Of a stretch of 64,000 nt of DNA, positions 12,723-56,771 are shown piece by piece. Position numbers and translations under genes: made by a program. The stretch is from contig NC_133619.1 of the NCBI RefSeq assembly GCF_048593235.1, positions 597,859,963 to 597,923,962 on the forward strand. Direction: 5' to 3'. Origin of the DNA: Sminthopsis crassicaudata. Lineage: Eukaryota. Under the pieces are notes generated by a model. The model did not search any database. It saw nothing but the letters and a program-made list of their open reading frames with translations, and had not been told where the DNA came from. Numbering within the stretch: the first letter of the stretch is position 1; the number at the start of each line of letters is the position of its first letter.

Positions 12723-12799
12723 TTATACACTGGAATCCAGGATATATATGGCCTGTGGGTGCTGCCGGCTTCTGAATTGGTGTCCATGGCCCCTCCTAC
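12723..12799 (-). CDS. CLDN16-like exon 5 (cytoplasmic tail, PDZ motif SSV)
   Basis: ctctgctctgctccacag|GTAGG...GTA TAA; alternative in-phase acceptor at 12859. Confidence 0.75.
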
Positions 12800-15018
12800 C
12801 TGTGGAGCAGAGCAGAGGAGAATCTGGATATGACATTTCATAAGGTCTCACCCTTAACTCTGACTGGGGACCCTGGGACTGGGAGGTGGAAGTAAAGCTA
12901 GGACCTCCCCCGCAAATGCCTGCTTGTTTGAAGAAGGGAACTTGGGGAGAGGAAGTGGGAGGGTTCTTGGACATACTGACCTGGGAGCCAGAGGCCTGGA
13001 AGACAGCAGGCCAGACCCAAAGCAGTGGCCATGCAGCCACCAGATCCCACAATACCTAACCAGCAAGACCAGCCCCACTCATAATAGCCAGTAAGAGGTC
13101 CTCGGGGATGAGTAGGTAGGGTTCTCTCCAGAGCCACCTCCACAGCAAACCAGAGTGACCCCAGTGCTCCAGGGAACCCTAAAGCAAAGGTGAGTGGGTT
13201 GATCCCCCTGTTTTGAAGTCCAGTACCAGCAGCCTCTCTTCCTCAGAAGCCCCAGTCTGGACCAGTCCCTCCCACACAGTTTCTGGGTGCTGAACTCCAC
13301 CTGCCCTTCTCCCTTTCCTGGAGCTTGGGTCCAGCCCCTAGTTTCAACCCTGGCTCTACCCCTTGCTGTTCCCCTCCTCCCTCACCTCCGGCACCTAAGA
13401 GACATCCTGATGCCCAGGCCAGCCGAACCCTTATCCTGGGATCAGTCCCCAGGAGCTGCACCTGGGTCAGAGTGAGGAGCAGGGCCACCAACCCACAGCT
13501 ACACAGCATCCCGGCCAGGAGCAACAGGGACCTGGTCAACACCCGGCGTCCTGGGGGAGGGGGAGCGGAGAGAAGGGGCATGGGGAGCACCAAGGAGTAA
13601 GGCTCAGGGAGCTGAGGGGAGGGGCACAAGGAACATTTTGCAAGGGGTCATGGAGAGGGAGGATGTTCAGGGAGTACTGAGGGGGATCAGGAAGCCCTGG
13701 GGGAGAAGAGAGCTGAGGGAAAACTGGAAGGATGACTTCAGAAACAAGTTATCTACTGGGGAAGAGCCTGGGAGAAAAGGAAAGGTGAGAAACAATGGAG
13801 AAGGAAGCCCAGAGGAGGGAGCCGGAGGGAAGTATGGTGGAAGGAAAATGGGGTAGGACTCCCCATGGCCGGGACAATGTACGCGAGGAGACGGGAGTGT
13901 GGGAAGGGTCTGTCATAGCGGGTGCTGCCCTAGGAAGACAAGAGCTAGGACCTGGACAGGGCCCTGCAGGCGGGGTAGGGGTGGAGGGCTCACGTGGATG
14001 TGCGGCCAGGATGGAATCGTACTGGTCGCAAGTCCGAATGCCATCCAGTAGATTGGTGACGCACGCCCGCCACAGCCCTTGGCATTTGTGGCTTACCTGG
14101 GGGTGGGCAGAAAGGGGAAGGCAGACTGAGCGAGTCCGAAAGGCAGCGGGCCGCTTCCACTCGGAAGAGGGAGCCGGAGGCTGCGTTACTCGCACGTCCT
14201 AGTGCGGTTTTTCCTACTTCAGCGGTAAGCTCCTTGAGGACAGGGCCTGTGTCACGTCAATCTTCACGCCACCCTCCCACGTCTCTGGGGTCCGACCTCA
14301 AGCCTTGCTTATTCTTTCTCCCCCCTACTCCTCCTATCCTGAGCCTCAGCACCAAGGAGAGCTCCTGGTTACGGGCTCTTCTCCCCCTTCTCCTTGCACG
14401 CAAGGGAGAATTAAAAAGTGCTAAATTACCCATTAAGAAAAGAAAAAAAAAAAAAAAAAAAAAAAAAAAAAAAAGGAGACGCGTTGCTTTCCACTGAGTG
14501 CTCTTGCCGGACTAGGTGAGCCAGAATTGATCGGGAGGTGGATTAAGACCAGTTCAGCACGCGGGGGGAGGGCTAGGATCGGAGCTGGGAGGGCCTTTGG
14601 AAAGGCACAGGACTGGATGGGATCTGGGCTAGGAAGGATGCTGAAGAGCGATGGGGGCAGAGTAGGTTCTAGAAAGAACAACAGGGGGCTGGAGCGAGAC
14701 TGGTCGGGGTTGGGGCCAGGATGCCGACTAAGGCTTGTTTGGACTGGATCAGAACTTGCAAGGGGTGTGGCCTCGGGGGAGAGGAGGATCCTGAACTGGT
14801 GCCGGGTTTTATCAGCCGAACTTCAGAGGACTCAAATTGCCTGCGAGGGGCAGGGTGGAGGTTCGAGGTTTGAGAAAGGGGCTCCCTGACTCTCCCCCTC
14901 TCACCTCCAGACTGTCGTCGGAGTTCACCACCCAGCAGTCGGTCCAGGTGGCCGTGAGCAGCAAGGCCGTAGAGAGCAAGGCCAGACTGGCCAGCGGCAA
15001 GAGGCTGGGTCCTGGCAT
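12723..15018 (-). CDS. Claudin-16-like protein, CLDN16 paralogue; 5 coding exons; 218 aa (or 238 aa with the upstream exon-5 acceptor)
   Basis: Exons 15018-14905 (114 nt), 14096-13994 (103), 13550-13386 (165), 13178-12981 (198), 12799-12723 (77; alt start 12859, 137). All introns GT-AG with phases 0,1,1,1 and no internal stops. Protein: [72 protein letters not shown]...[17 protein letters not shown]...YILDSSV. Recalled human CLDN16 exons are 114/103/165/192/134. Confidence 0.9.
12981..13178 (-). CDS. CLDN16-like exon 4 (ECL2-TM4)
   Basis: tttgctttag|GGTTCC...CCCAG|gtcagt; 198 nt; [30 protein letters not shown]. Confidence 0.9.
13386..13550 (-). CDS. CLDN16-like exon 3 (TM2-ICL-TM3)
   Basis: cctcccccag|GACGCC...GGAG|gtgagg; 165 nt; [15 protein letters not shown]... 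Confidence 0.88.
13994..14096 (-). CDS. CLDN16-like exon 2 (ECL1, GLW-C-C signature)
   Basis: ccccag|GTAAGC...CCAC|gtgagc; 103 nt. Confidence 0.93.
14443..14473. repeat. Poly(A) run in CLDN16-like intron 1
   Basis: Direct reading. Confidence 0.9.
14905..15018 (-). CDS. CLDN16-like exon 1 (TM1, start of ECL1)
   Basis: ATG at 15018 gives 38 codons to LE, the same as CLDN16; donor GAG|gtgaga. An in-frame upstream ATG lies at 15063. Confidence 0.88.
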
Positions 15019-55100: not shown

Positions 55101-56771
55101 TTATTGTTAGAAGTGATGAAGCCTTCCAGATATGATGAATTTTTGCTTGATTTTCTTCCAGTCTCTTCTTCCTTGTGCAATGAAATATCCCTTCCATGAA
55201 GTAGCAGCTGTCATTCTCCCCTACAAGTATGCTATTGCATCATTAGGTTTTTAAGGGAATATGAGTTTGGGGAGGAATTATATGTATCTTGCAGAATTTT
55301 ATATTCTCTTATCTAGAAGATTGGGGGGAGGAAAGTTTTTTTTTTTTTTTCAGAGTAACTTTCTGGGGATGGGTGTTTGAGACTAAATTCTTTGTGGTTT
55401 ATCTGTAGGCTATTAAAGGTCTGTTCTTTAAAGATACATTTGGGAAAAAAAAAAAAAAACAAGCAGTACTGCCAGCCGGCCAAAAACCTTGGTTTTTATC
55501 CTCACAACCGCTCTTAACATTCTGCAGAACTGAAGGGCTGGCACTAGTGAATTAACCCTTAAGGGCTAGCCTAGTGAAGTCAAGTAGGAGCCAAGAGGAA
55601 AAGAAATAACTACCTCGGGCCAGAAACGGGACAAAGTAGTATGTAATTTCTGTGTTTTAACTTGACTCAGAAACTTGAGAGGGTCCCCGGCGGGGAGGAG
55701 CCTGCTACGTGGCATTCCAGGGCCTGAAACGGAAGGCGCTGGAGTCCGTAGGAAAGGAAAGGTTTCTTGAAAAGAGATGGGGCTAAGAAACAGGGAAAGC
55801 ACGGGTGGAAATCAAGCCCTGCAACTTTGTCTACAACCCGGCAGGGCAACTTTGTCTCTAAACTAGCTGTCAGGGGGTGGAGAGTTCCCAGCTCAGCCCG
55901 ATCACGGGGGTGGGGCAGGACCTGGAAGGAAAGCGATCTTTCCAAGTTCTATAGACTTAAGCCTGGGTCACACCTGCATTGCATCTTCAAACTCCCTCCT
56001 CGGTCTGCCTCCGACACGGCCAGCTCCCTGGAGCATCCTGGAGGGAATGGGGGTGCCATCAGCTAAGCCCACAGAACCTGGACACTGTCTCCATCGGAAT
56101 CTGGACAAAGGTCCGCTCTATTACGTGCCCAATCGGTTATGCAGCCTCCGCGAAAAGCTCTCCAGTGATGGGGAGCTCACTATCTATCAGGCCGGTGCAT
56201 TCATTTTGGACCAGCTCGCTCTAAGGTCGGGAAGATCCTGCTCATTTGGGCCTGCCCGTGTCCCCCGCTAGGCCCCCCGCCGCCGCCGCACCTTAAAGTA
56301 GGCCACTTGTAGGTAGTTGTAGGGGCTCCGCTTGCGGAACTCCAGCTCCAGCTCCTCGCTGAGGGTGTGAGCGGCGGGCGGGCCCAGGCAGGCGCGGAGG
56401 CAGGCGGCACGATGCAGCAGCCTCCCGAAGAAGCGCAGGTCGTGCAGGGCAGTGGCGGTCCGGTCGGTCTCGGCCTGGAGCCCCAGTTCAGGCTCCCAGG
56501 GGTGCTGGGCGGCGCACTCCGAGCGGCAGCGCAGGCGCAGGGCTCGGAGCGAGGCCCGGGAGCGCAGCGCCCGTTCCATGTGCAGCACCACCGCCGCCCA
56601 GTCCCCGCGCGCGTAGGCCGCGGCGCCCGCCGCAAACAGCCCGTCGGGGGTCTCAGTCGACTCCAGCCCCGCTGCCACAGACGCCGTCCCCGGCTCCGCC
56701 GCGGTCCAGAGCCAGGCCTCAGCCCCAGCCCAGGCCACGGACAACCACAGCCACAGAGCGAGCCAGGCCAT
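40180..56771 (-). CDS. P3H1: Prolyl 3-hydroxylase 1 (leprecan/LEPRE1), 15 exons, 741 aa
   Basis: Exons 56771-56292, 53522-53370, 52609-52420, 52032-51901, 49714-49575, 44068-43979, 43735-43683, 43492-43371, 42413-42286, 42139-42044, 41654-41504, 41393-41276, 41156-41081, 40898-40758, 40335-40180; total 2226 nt; all GT-AG and in phase. Signal peptide, HVD...H 2OG-Fe(II) ligands, GQRCA and C-terminal KDEL. Confidence 0.98.
44220..44490 (+). mobile_element. L1 3' end with A-rich tail
   Basis: tatattgtattt..atatttaacatgtattgg..ggaagg..aataaaaa. Confidence 0.7.
44640..45870 (+). mobile_element. L1 inter-ORF spacer joined directly to ORF2 C-terminus and 3' UTR
   Basis: atcataaccatgaa joined to tttacagcaagtttccctgataaaggcc at ~44865. 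Confidence 0.75.
45890..46400 (-). mobile_element. L3/CR1 fragment
   Basis: tttagaacccagaactgaataaatactctag..caatatggaagcc antisense CR1-like segment. Confidence 0.5.
47020..47178 (-). mobile_element. WSINE1-type SINE with 17-bp TSD
   Basis: TSD cagcataagatattatt at 47003-47019 and 47179-47195. Confidence 0.93.
52368..52411. repeat. (GAGCA)n pentanucleotide repeat beside the P3H1 exon 3 donor
   Basis: Direct reading. Confidence 0.9.
54640..54850 (+). mobile_element. MIR-type CORE-SINE
   Basis: ggtggcacagtg head; caagtcacttaacc..ctgcctcagtttccttatttgtaaaat core. Confidence 0.8.

Follow-up and report, generated by a model that had tools for sequence, protein, structure and literature searches.

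Claudin-16 and claudin-19 together make up the paracellular Mg2+/Ca2+ pathway of the kidney, the failure of which leads to familial hypomagnesaemia with hypercalciuria and nephrocalcinosis (FHHNC), with CLDN16 being the cation-pore claudin of the thick ascending limb. Catalogues of mammalian claudins rest on human and mouse. The subject here is an additional CLDN16-type gene, termed CLDN16L, that lies beside CLDN19 in a stretch of 64,000 nucleotides (nt) from Sminthopsis crassicaudata (RefSeq assembly GCF_048593235.1, contig NC_133619.1, positions 597,859,963 to 597,923,962; the window). In claudin-16, five acidic residues of the first extracellular loop (ECL1; D104, D105, E119, D126, and E140) are needed for cation permeability, and a role for its TRV motif has been described likewise (PMC3867513). 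The human genes at 3q28 occur in the order P3H2, CLDN1, CLDN16, TMEM207 (PMC9226698). In the window, P3H1, CLDN19, and CLDN16L are arranged head-to-tail on the minus strand, from the P3H1 start (56771) to the CLDN16L stop (12723). Exon models, RNA splice joints, and P3H1 matches bear out these limits and the shared strand as given in an earlier note on this DNA, which had also correctly placed the CLDN16-type gene on the strand of CLDN19 and 2.9 kb from its stop; the distance is 2,881 nt to the CLDN16L start codon and ~1.85 kb to the CLDN16L 5′ exon. The best explanation of the locus as a whole, and in our judgement a probable one, is that P3H1→CLDN19→CLDN16L is a block containing an ancient sister paralogue of CLDN16, a claudin of the cation-pore type that has evolved fast in mammals.

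CLDN16L has in common with CLDN16 (paracellin-1) five coding exons, an intron that interrupts ECL1 after DDSLE, the signature ATWTDCW...DDSLEV...GLW...C...C, and residues D104, D105, and D126, and both proteins end in a class I PDZ-type motif (T-R-V in CLDN16 compared to S-x-V in CLDN16L). However, CLDN16L belongs to a separate orthologue group, adjoins CLDN19 and P3H1 instead of CLDN1 and TMEM207, possesses a short C-tail, and differs from CLDN16 in transmembrane helices TM2–TM3 and the second extracellular loop (ECL2; just 38–42% identity) and, in marsupials, at positions 119 (E to A) and 140 (E to A or T). CLDN19, a claudin-fold tight-junction protein, is adjacent and on the same strand, but belongs to the CLDN1/7/19 group of classic claudins with four exons and is only distantly related to CLDN16L (mouse claudin-19 versus CLDN16L, 19–21% identity in Foldseek). 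The closest known genes are annotated as ‘claudin-16-like’ in Monodelphis (XP_007493006.1), platypus (XP_039768154.1), Callorhinchus, Anguilla, Bombina, Podarcis, and Strigops, and have a position directly downstream of CLDN19 in common. Mammalian CLDN16L proteins are ~50% identical to the sauropsid and fish members, which are themselves 65–73% identical to the shark protein.

Using coding exon 4 alone to search 1.84 billion representative proteins, a Dromiciops ‘claudin-16-like’ protein was recovered far beyond chance (E = 1.6e-33) as the one close cluster (94% identity), with CLDN16-type proteins following at 43–50%. A maximum-likelihood tree of 50 rows, rooted on the CLDN19 of the window, contained a CLDN16L clade (support, 98/97) that included the Callorhinchus protein P0028, frogs, ray-finned fishes (sturgeon and eels), and amniotes, with the window CLDN16L nested among the amniotes (100/98). 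In a second tree, rooted on lamprey and with more mammals included, CLDN16 (support, 97; sharks, 96, and bony vertebrates, 97) and CLDN16L (98) formed reciprocal clades. The window gene falls outside of the CLDN16 clade and within its sister clade in both trees (98/97 and 98, respectively), and each of the two clades contains a single Callorhinchus gene, the two being on separate scaffolds. A duplication confined to marsupials, that is, a copy recently transposed after the marsupial split, which had been named beforehand as the finding that would speak against an ancient origin, was rejected (approximately unbiased [AU] test, p = 4e-39). CLDN16L is an ancient sister paralogue of CLDN16, and the two split before the divergence of cartilaginous and bony vertebrates.

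Synteny is the independent evidence that settles the orthology of CLDN16L. Across comparison loci viewed with 10-kb flanks, the gene directly upstream of CLDN16L, in the same orientation, was a claudin in elephant shark (L001), Dromiciops (L003), tammar wallaby, kakapo (L006), eel (L007), and wall lizard (L008). The exons of this upstream claudin match CLDN19 of the window, including the ...REYV end, and the elephant shark and kakapo neighbours grouped with named CLDN19 proteins in the CLDN19 clade (100/100). In kakapo, YBX1 is the next gene after CLDN16L and convergent with it, such that CLDN16L fills the interval between CLDN19 and YBX1. A CLDN16-type gene of Lampetra follows a CLDN19-like gene in the same orientation, ~9.8 kb from the last exon of the latter (L005). 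The Callorhinchus member of the CLDN16 clade (P0047, L002) is instead head-to-head with a claudin that a small tree put on the CLDN1/CLDN7 side, CLDN1 and CLDN7 not being separated; a word search with exon 1 of this neighbour, the stop-free extension of which spans just 110 amino acids, returned CLDN1, CLDN7, and CLDN19 fragments at near-equal scores, and a search of the PDB, which contains no CLDN1 structure, did not separate CLDN1 from CLDN19 for the shark neighbours. No claudin occurred within 10 kb of quail CLDN16.

The neighbourhood of shark CLDN16 agrees with the human order at 3q28, and the window CLDN16L is not in a 3q28-type setting with CLDN1 and TMEM207. As both arrangements occur in shark, the tandem with CLDN19 and the head-to-head pair with a CLDN1-type gene were both already present in the jawed-vertebrate common ancestor; the departure from the gene order and orientation of 3q28, which the earlier note had rightly pointed out, is thus itself ancient. 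The shark and lamprey loci to which that note had directed attention both carry the CLDN19→CLDN16L-type tandem, with shark CLDN16 beside a CLDN1/7-type claudin. Its proposal of an ohnologue block is largely borne out: CLDN16L is ancient, separate, and in tandem behind CLDN19 from elephant shark to marsupials. The evidence for duplication of a block covers two to three gene pairs, and the pattern is that expected of a block duplication of the age of the two early rounds of vertebrate genome duplication (2R), which does not by itself prove a whole-genome event. CLDN16 and CLDN16L probably separated in a block duplication that also gave rise to CLDN19 as opposed to CLDN1/7 and to P3H1 as opposed to P3H2, a course that would fit the genome duplications early in vertebrate history. 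Judging from lamprey, the ancestral unit may have been a CLDN1/7/19-like gene followed in tandem by a CLDN16-like gene. With YBX1/2/3, CLDN7, and P3H3, this paralogy would reach four human regions in all.

The comparison loci also contained other genes. In elephant shark (L001, 17968–20392, minus strand) and wall lizard (L008, 17648–23853, minus strand), CLDN16L is followed closely by a third claudin gene in tail-to-tail orientation, with a CLDN16-type VTDCW motif and an intron inside ECL1; the shark copy ends in YV, and no trace of such a gene was found in the window. Downstream of quail CLDN16 (L009, 21841–25595, minus strand) is a gene of 147 amino acids ending in ...PPSYEDIMKENKL, a candidate TMEM207 by size and position. 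In Dromiciops, Gracilinanus, Antechinus, Sarcophilus, and Sminthopsis, the contigs that bear CLDN16 and CLDN16L are equal in size and seem to be a single giant chromosome; in Monodelphis, tammar, and bilby, the two genes are on different contigs. This distribution probably reflects marsupial chromosome fusions, not local duplication.

As a claudin gene, CLDN16L is intact, its transcripts are spliced, and its sequence is under selective constraint. Its exons were first predicted from six-frame translations and splice sites, after which contigs of public sequencing runs were aligned to positions 12500–18200 of the window. Two RNA runs from different studies (X5 and X6) contained CT..AC joints (GT..AG on the minus strand) for all five introns (Table 1). 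The spliced coding sequence of 657 nt is a stop-free open reading frame (ORF) for 218 amino acids, with the ATG at 15018 being the first in-frame ATG of the spliced form, and the protein is 100% identical to RefSeq XP_074153720.1 (‘claudin-16-like isoform X2’, Sminthopsis crassicaudata), with which the last-exon acceptor at 12799 defined by RNA joints also agrees. The 5′ non-coding exon contains an in-frame stop at ~15902 with no upstream in-frame ATG; it extends at least to 16052, the furthest contig end. The 3′ untranslated region (UTR) extends below 12500, as contigs of 1280 and 1320 nt run beyond that position. Read-through from CLDN19 was considered as a source of these transcripts and discarded, as CLDN16L has a 5′ exon of its own and no joint to CLDN19 exons was present within the 5.7 kb aligned. 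A third RNA run (X9) covered the last exon of CLDN19 at high depth (633) and CLDN16L by a single contig of 55 nt over the last joint, weak evidence with sides of 25 nt. A further run (X1) had even coverage and no joints, and looks like DNA.

Some transcript variation was also apparent. In X5 and X6, a second donor in exon 3 (13462; joint 13177->13461) was used at about half the depth of the main one and drops 76 nt with a frameshift; this isoform may be a regulated unproductive form or noise. Contigs of X5 also span 15025–15355, between the 5′ exon and the first coding exon, and an unspliced 5′ variant would hold an in-frame ATG at 15063, in the manner of the X1-type RefSeq models of tammar, Sarcophilus, and Antechinus that begin at an upstream ATG (MG..GRLGYC..). 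CLDN16L may therefore possess a second, unspliced 5′ end that adds 15 residues.

Compared to the Dromiciops coding sequence (taken from L003 and translating exactly to P0001), CLDN16L had a nonsynonymous rate (dN) of 0.043 and a synonymous rate (dS) of 0.33, a dN/dS of 0.13 (NG86) or 0.21 (YN00), with differences at the three codon positions of 16:9:41 and introns ~81% identical. Among three marsupials, 1 of 48 sites varied in ECL1 and 9 of 56 in TM2–TM3. Intact models were present in 12 marsupial species, representing all major orders, and in platypus, and true claudin-16 occurs in the same species.

The Dromiciops orthologue P0001, 92% identical to the window protein, scored above the cut-offs of Pfam PF00822 (PMP22_Claudin; 35.6 bits, cut-off 26.7) and PF13903 (Claudin_2; 35.1 bits, cut-off 29.1). 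Single exons of CLDN16L, too short for such a test, did not reach the Pfam cut-offs, with only exon 2 giving a weak claudin match. An AlphaFold2 model contained four confident transmembrane helices (residues 3–30, 73–105, 110–147, and 164–191), and W29, G45-L46-W47, C50, and C61 were invariant in an alignment of 38 sequences. Identity was unevenly distributed along the protein: ECL1 of the window CLDN16L was 83% identical to alligator and shark CLDN16L and 79% to opossum CLDN16, compared to 34–36% and 38%, respectively, for the segment from TM2 through the intracellular loop to TM3, and 39–42% and 42% for ECL2. With ECL1 numbered from the gorilla CLDN16 protein, which was included for numbering alone in an analysis free of human sequence, three of the five acidic residues are kept (D104, D105, and D126), while 119 and 140 are both A; at 140, other marsupials have T and platypus has R. 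In non-mammalian CLDN16L proteins, all five acidic residues are retained, position 140 being D or E. Leucine 145 is replaced by R in the window protein. The C-terminus reads SSV in the window, SRV in other CLDN16L proteins including platypus, and TRV in CLDN16, all of the class I PDZ type.

We infer from these sequence features that CLDN16L is probably a tight-junction claudin whose pore loop resembles that of CLDN16 but is less acidic, and whose membrane-embedded interfaces were remodelled in mammals. Such a four-helix claudin would line a paracellular cation pathway with its CLDN16-type acid-rich ECL1 and would be anchored to ZO-type scaffolds by the class I PDZ-binding SSV end. On the mammalian stem, the protein changed very fast outside of ECL1, with marsupials dropping two of the five acidic pore residues.

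Several observations weigh against the reading of the locus as an ancient block with a cation-pore-type CLDN16 paralogue. When rooted on CLDN19, the CLDN16 groups and the single lamprey gene formed an unresolved base; the mammalian CLDN16L stem is very long (1.6–1.8 substitutions per site) and compositionally odd; and a mammal-only duplication was not rejected by sequence alone (AU p = 0.057 and 0.11), so that orthology with sauropsid CLDN16L leans on synteny and shared characters. The linkage of P3H2 to CLDN1 and CLDN16 comes from the human map only (PMC9226698), and evidence for the block covers two to three gene pairs (CLDN16/16L, CLDN19/CLDN1-7, and P3H1/P3H2). In the structural model ECL1 had a predicted local distance difference test score (pLDDT) <50, and the top ten Foldseek matches in the PDB, though all claudins (CLDN19, 9, 15, 4, and 3), were weak (E, 9e-3 to 1e-1; TM-scores, 0.34–0.62). 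Searches limited to predicted proteins returned no CLDN16L-type eutherian protein, which suggests loss of the gene in eutherians. The AU results and the long branch of biased composition leave room for a mammal-specific CLDN16 copy inserted beside CLDN19 with loss of the ancestral CLDN16L. Such a copy, however, must have entered exactly the ancestral CLDN16L slot in the same orientation, while mammalian CLDN16L has SHKC, LWR-x-C, and CDQYDS in common with sauropsid CLDN16L and a short C-tail in common with the non-mammalian proteins, is placed inside amniote CLDN16L by free trees (98–100), and keeps its introns, so that it is not a retrocopy; this history is scarcely credible. A small-scale segmental duplication of the claudin pair, ancient and before the jawed-vertebrate radiation but not part of a whole-genome duplication, is in line with the few gene pairs and with the differing orientation of the blocks (tandem versus head-to-head), yet we regard it as unlikely given that the duplication falls in the time of 2R, between the cyclostome split (or thereabouts) and the separation of chondrichthyans from osteichthyans, and that the two shark blocks are on different scaffolds.

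The accelerated mammalian stem, the missing E119 and E140, the low Pfam score (35.6 bits compared to 62 for shark CLDN16L and 59 for opossum CLDN16), and the appreciable depth of the frameshifting donor could together describe a decaying but transcribed relic, heading in marsupials for a loss of the eutherian type. That the ORF is intact in 12 marsupials and platypus, with a dN/dS of 0.13–0.21, a nearly invariant marsupial ECL1, and canonical splice sites in use, makes decay very unlikely. For a working CLDN16L it may be asked whether it is an obligate cis-partner of CLDN19 in a second kidney cation pore, the earlier note having proposed a cis-linked heteromer pair. Strand assembly and cation selectivity of CLDN16 depend on CLDN19 (PMC3867513), CLDN16L and CLDN19 are 1.9–2.9 kb apart on one strand and in tandem from lamprey to marsupials, and X9 contains CLDN19 together with the short CLDN16L contig. 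Against this, the X9 contig has sides of just 25 nt, CLDN16L has its own 5′ exon unjoined to those of CLDN19, and spliced CLDN16L is well covered in X5 and X6, in which no contig matches the last exon or 3′UTR of CLDN19; this, though contigs prove presence and not absence, counts against obligatory co-expression. Further, TM2–TM3, the region of mutations that disrupt the interaction with CLDN19, is just 34% identical to non-mammalian CLDN16L, and L145 is replaced by R. An obligate partnership is therefore possible but doubtful.

In word searches with P0001 and the elephant shark protein P0028, ‘claudin-16-like’ proteins were returned from platypus, turtles, squamates, crocodilians, many birds, and frogs, and among fishes from eels, osteoglossomorphs, sturgeon, bichir, chimaera, and rays, along with one Lampetra ‘claudin-16’ and true claudin-16 from all tetrapods. 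The description of CLDN16L as a marsupial peculiarity was consequently too narrow, the gene being annotated across non-eutherian jawed vertebrates including platypus, birds, and chimaera, and should be widened to a gene that non-eutherian jawed vertebrates have retained, that evolves fast in mammals, and that was not found in eutherians. RefSeq and UniProt list it in dozens of species as ‘claudin-16-like’ and at times wrongly as ‘claudin-16’, as in Columba (P0035), Alligator (P0059), Struthio (P0061), and Trichosurus (P0278), of which Alligator and Struthio fall in the CLDN16L clade in trees, Trichosurus is a member of the CLDN16L 90% cluster, and Columba was judged by sequence only. Such labels can corrupt orthology-based comparisons. 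Literature searches found no description of CLDN16L, of its linkage to CLDN19, or of the paralogon, the sole mention being one line in an expression table of eel larvae. The gene model is thus already in automatic annotation, and the gene itself is an uncharacterised claudin in the literature found.

Most non-eutherian jawed vertebrates appear to carry this extra CLDN16-type gene, beside CLDN19 since before the split of sharks and bony vertebrates, and the linkage would offer a genomic rationale for the partnership of CLDN16 and CLDN19. Tentatively, the kidney pore partnership may have originated from the ancestral tandem of CLDN1/7/19-like and CLDN16-like genes, with non-eutherians keeping CLDN16L, the first cis-neighbour of CLDN19, as a second pore subunit of different charge or for another tissue, eutherians losing it such that CLDN19 now pairs only with CLDN16 from beside CLDN1, and marsupial CLDN16L, short of two acidic pore residues and remodelled in TM2–TM3, being a natural variant in selectivity or partner. 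CLDN16L is a candidate extra pore subunit for ion transport in the kidney, gill, eggshell gland, and inner ear of non-eutherian models, and the marsupial changes at E119 and E140 would be a natural experiment on pore charge.

Table 1. Genes, exons, and other features of the window, with the basis for each
Feature	Coordinates	Strand	Basis
CLDN16L 5′ non-coding exon	15840..16052	-	joint 15023->15839 (skips 815, CT..AC) in X5 and X6
CLDN16L coding exon 1 (ATG 15018; TM1 and start of ECL1 to ...DDSLE)	14905..15024	-	joints at both ends; translation
CLDN16L coding exon 2 (103 nt; ECL1 core, GLW and C...C signature)	13994..14096	-	joints 14094->14903 and 13549->13993
CLDN16L coding exon 3 (165 nt; TM2, intracellular loop, TM3)	13386..13550	-	joint 13177->13385
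CLDN16L coding exon 4 (198 nt; ECL2 and TM4)	12981..13178	-	joints at 13178 and 12981
CLDN16L last coding exon (C-tail ...LDSSV, stop 12723-12725)	12723..12799	-	joint 12797->12979 in X5, X6, and the 55-nt X9 contig
CLDN19	17899..27666	-	splice sites; 211-aa translation; tree
P3H1 (prolyl 3-hydroxylase 1), coding span	40180..56771	-	exon 1 matches; KDEL terminus
DUF2452 (C1orf50-like) candidate gene, first exon region	57741..58188	+	weak Pfam DUF2452 match (E = 0.0012), below curated cut-off
Retrovirus-like ORFs, fragmented (CLDN19 intron 3)	21245..23328	+	Pfam Integrase_Zn (2e-06); weak rve
Low complexity (CLDN16L intron 1)	14430..14497		long A/T homopolymer run
Low complexity (CLDN19 3′ region)	17497..17641		repeat, TCTC/CACA-rich by translation

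The window is eukaryotic and consists of AT-rich repeat DNA with GC-rich gene islands. CLDN19 has coding exons at 27666–27444, 24772–24608, 24368–24284, and 18061–17899 (223, 165, 85, and 163 nt), which encode a product of 211 amino acids with a C-terminal YV that belongs to the CLDN19 clade (100/100). Exon 1 of P3H1, from 56771, matches PDB 8k0e_A (‘Prolyl 3-hydroxylase 1’; 170 bits) and Pfam TPR_leprecan (8e-36), and the KDEL codons are at 40194–40183, with the stop at ~40180. The DUF2452 candidate is divergent from P3H1 and is a synteny marker only. On the strand opposite to CLDN19, the retrovirus-like fragments in intron 3 include an integrase-type ORF with a weak rve match (E = 0.001, 19.7 bits; cut-off, 32.6), beyond which a pair of ORFs (110 and 143 amino acids) gave no family match. 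RNA contigs break at both of the low-complexity tracts.

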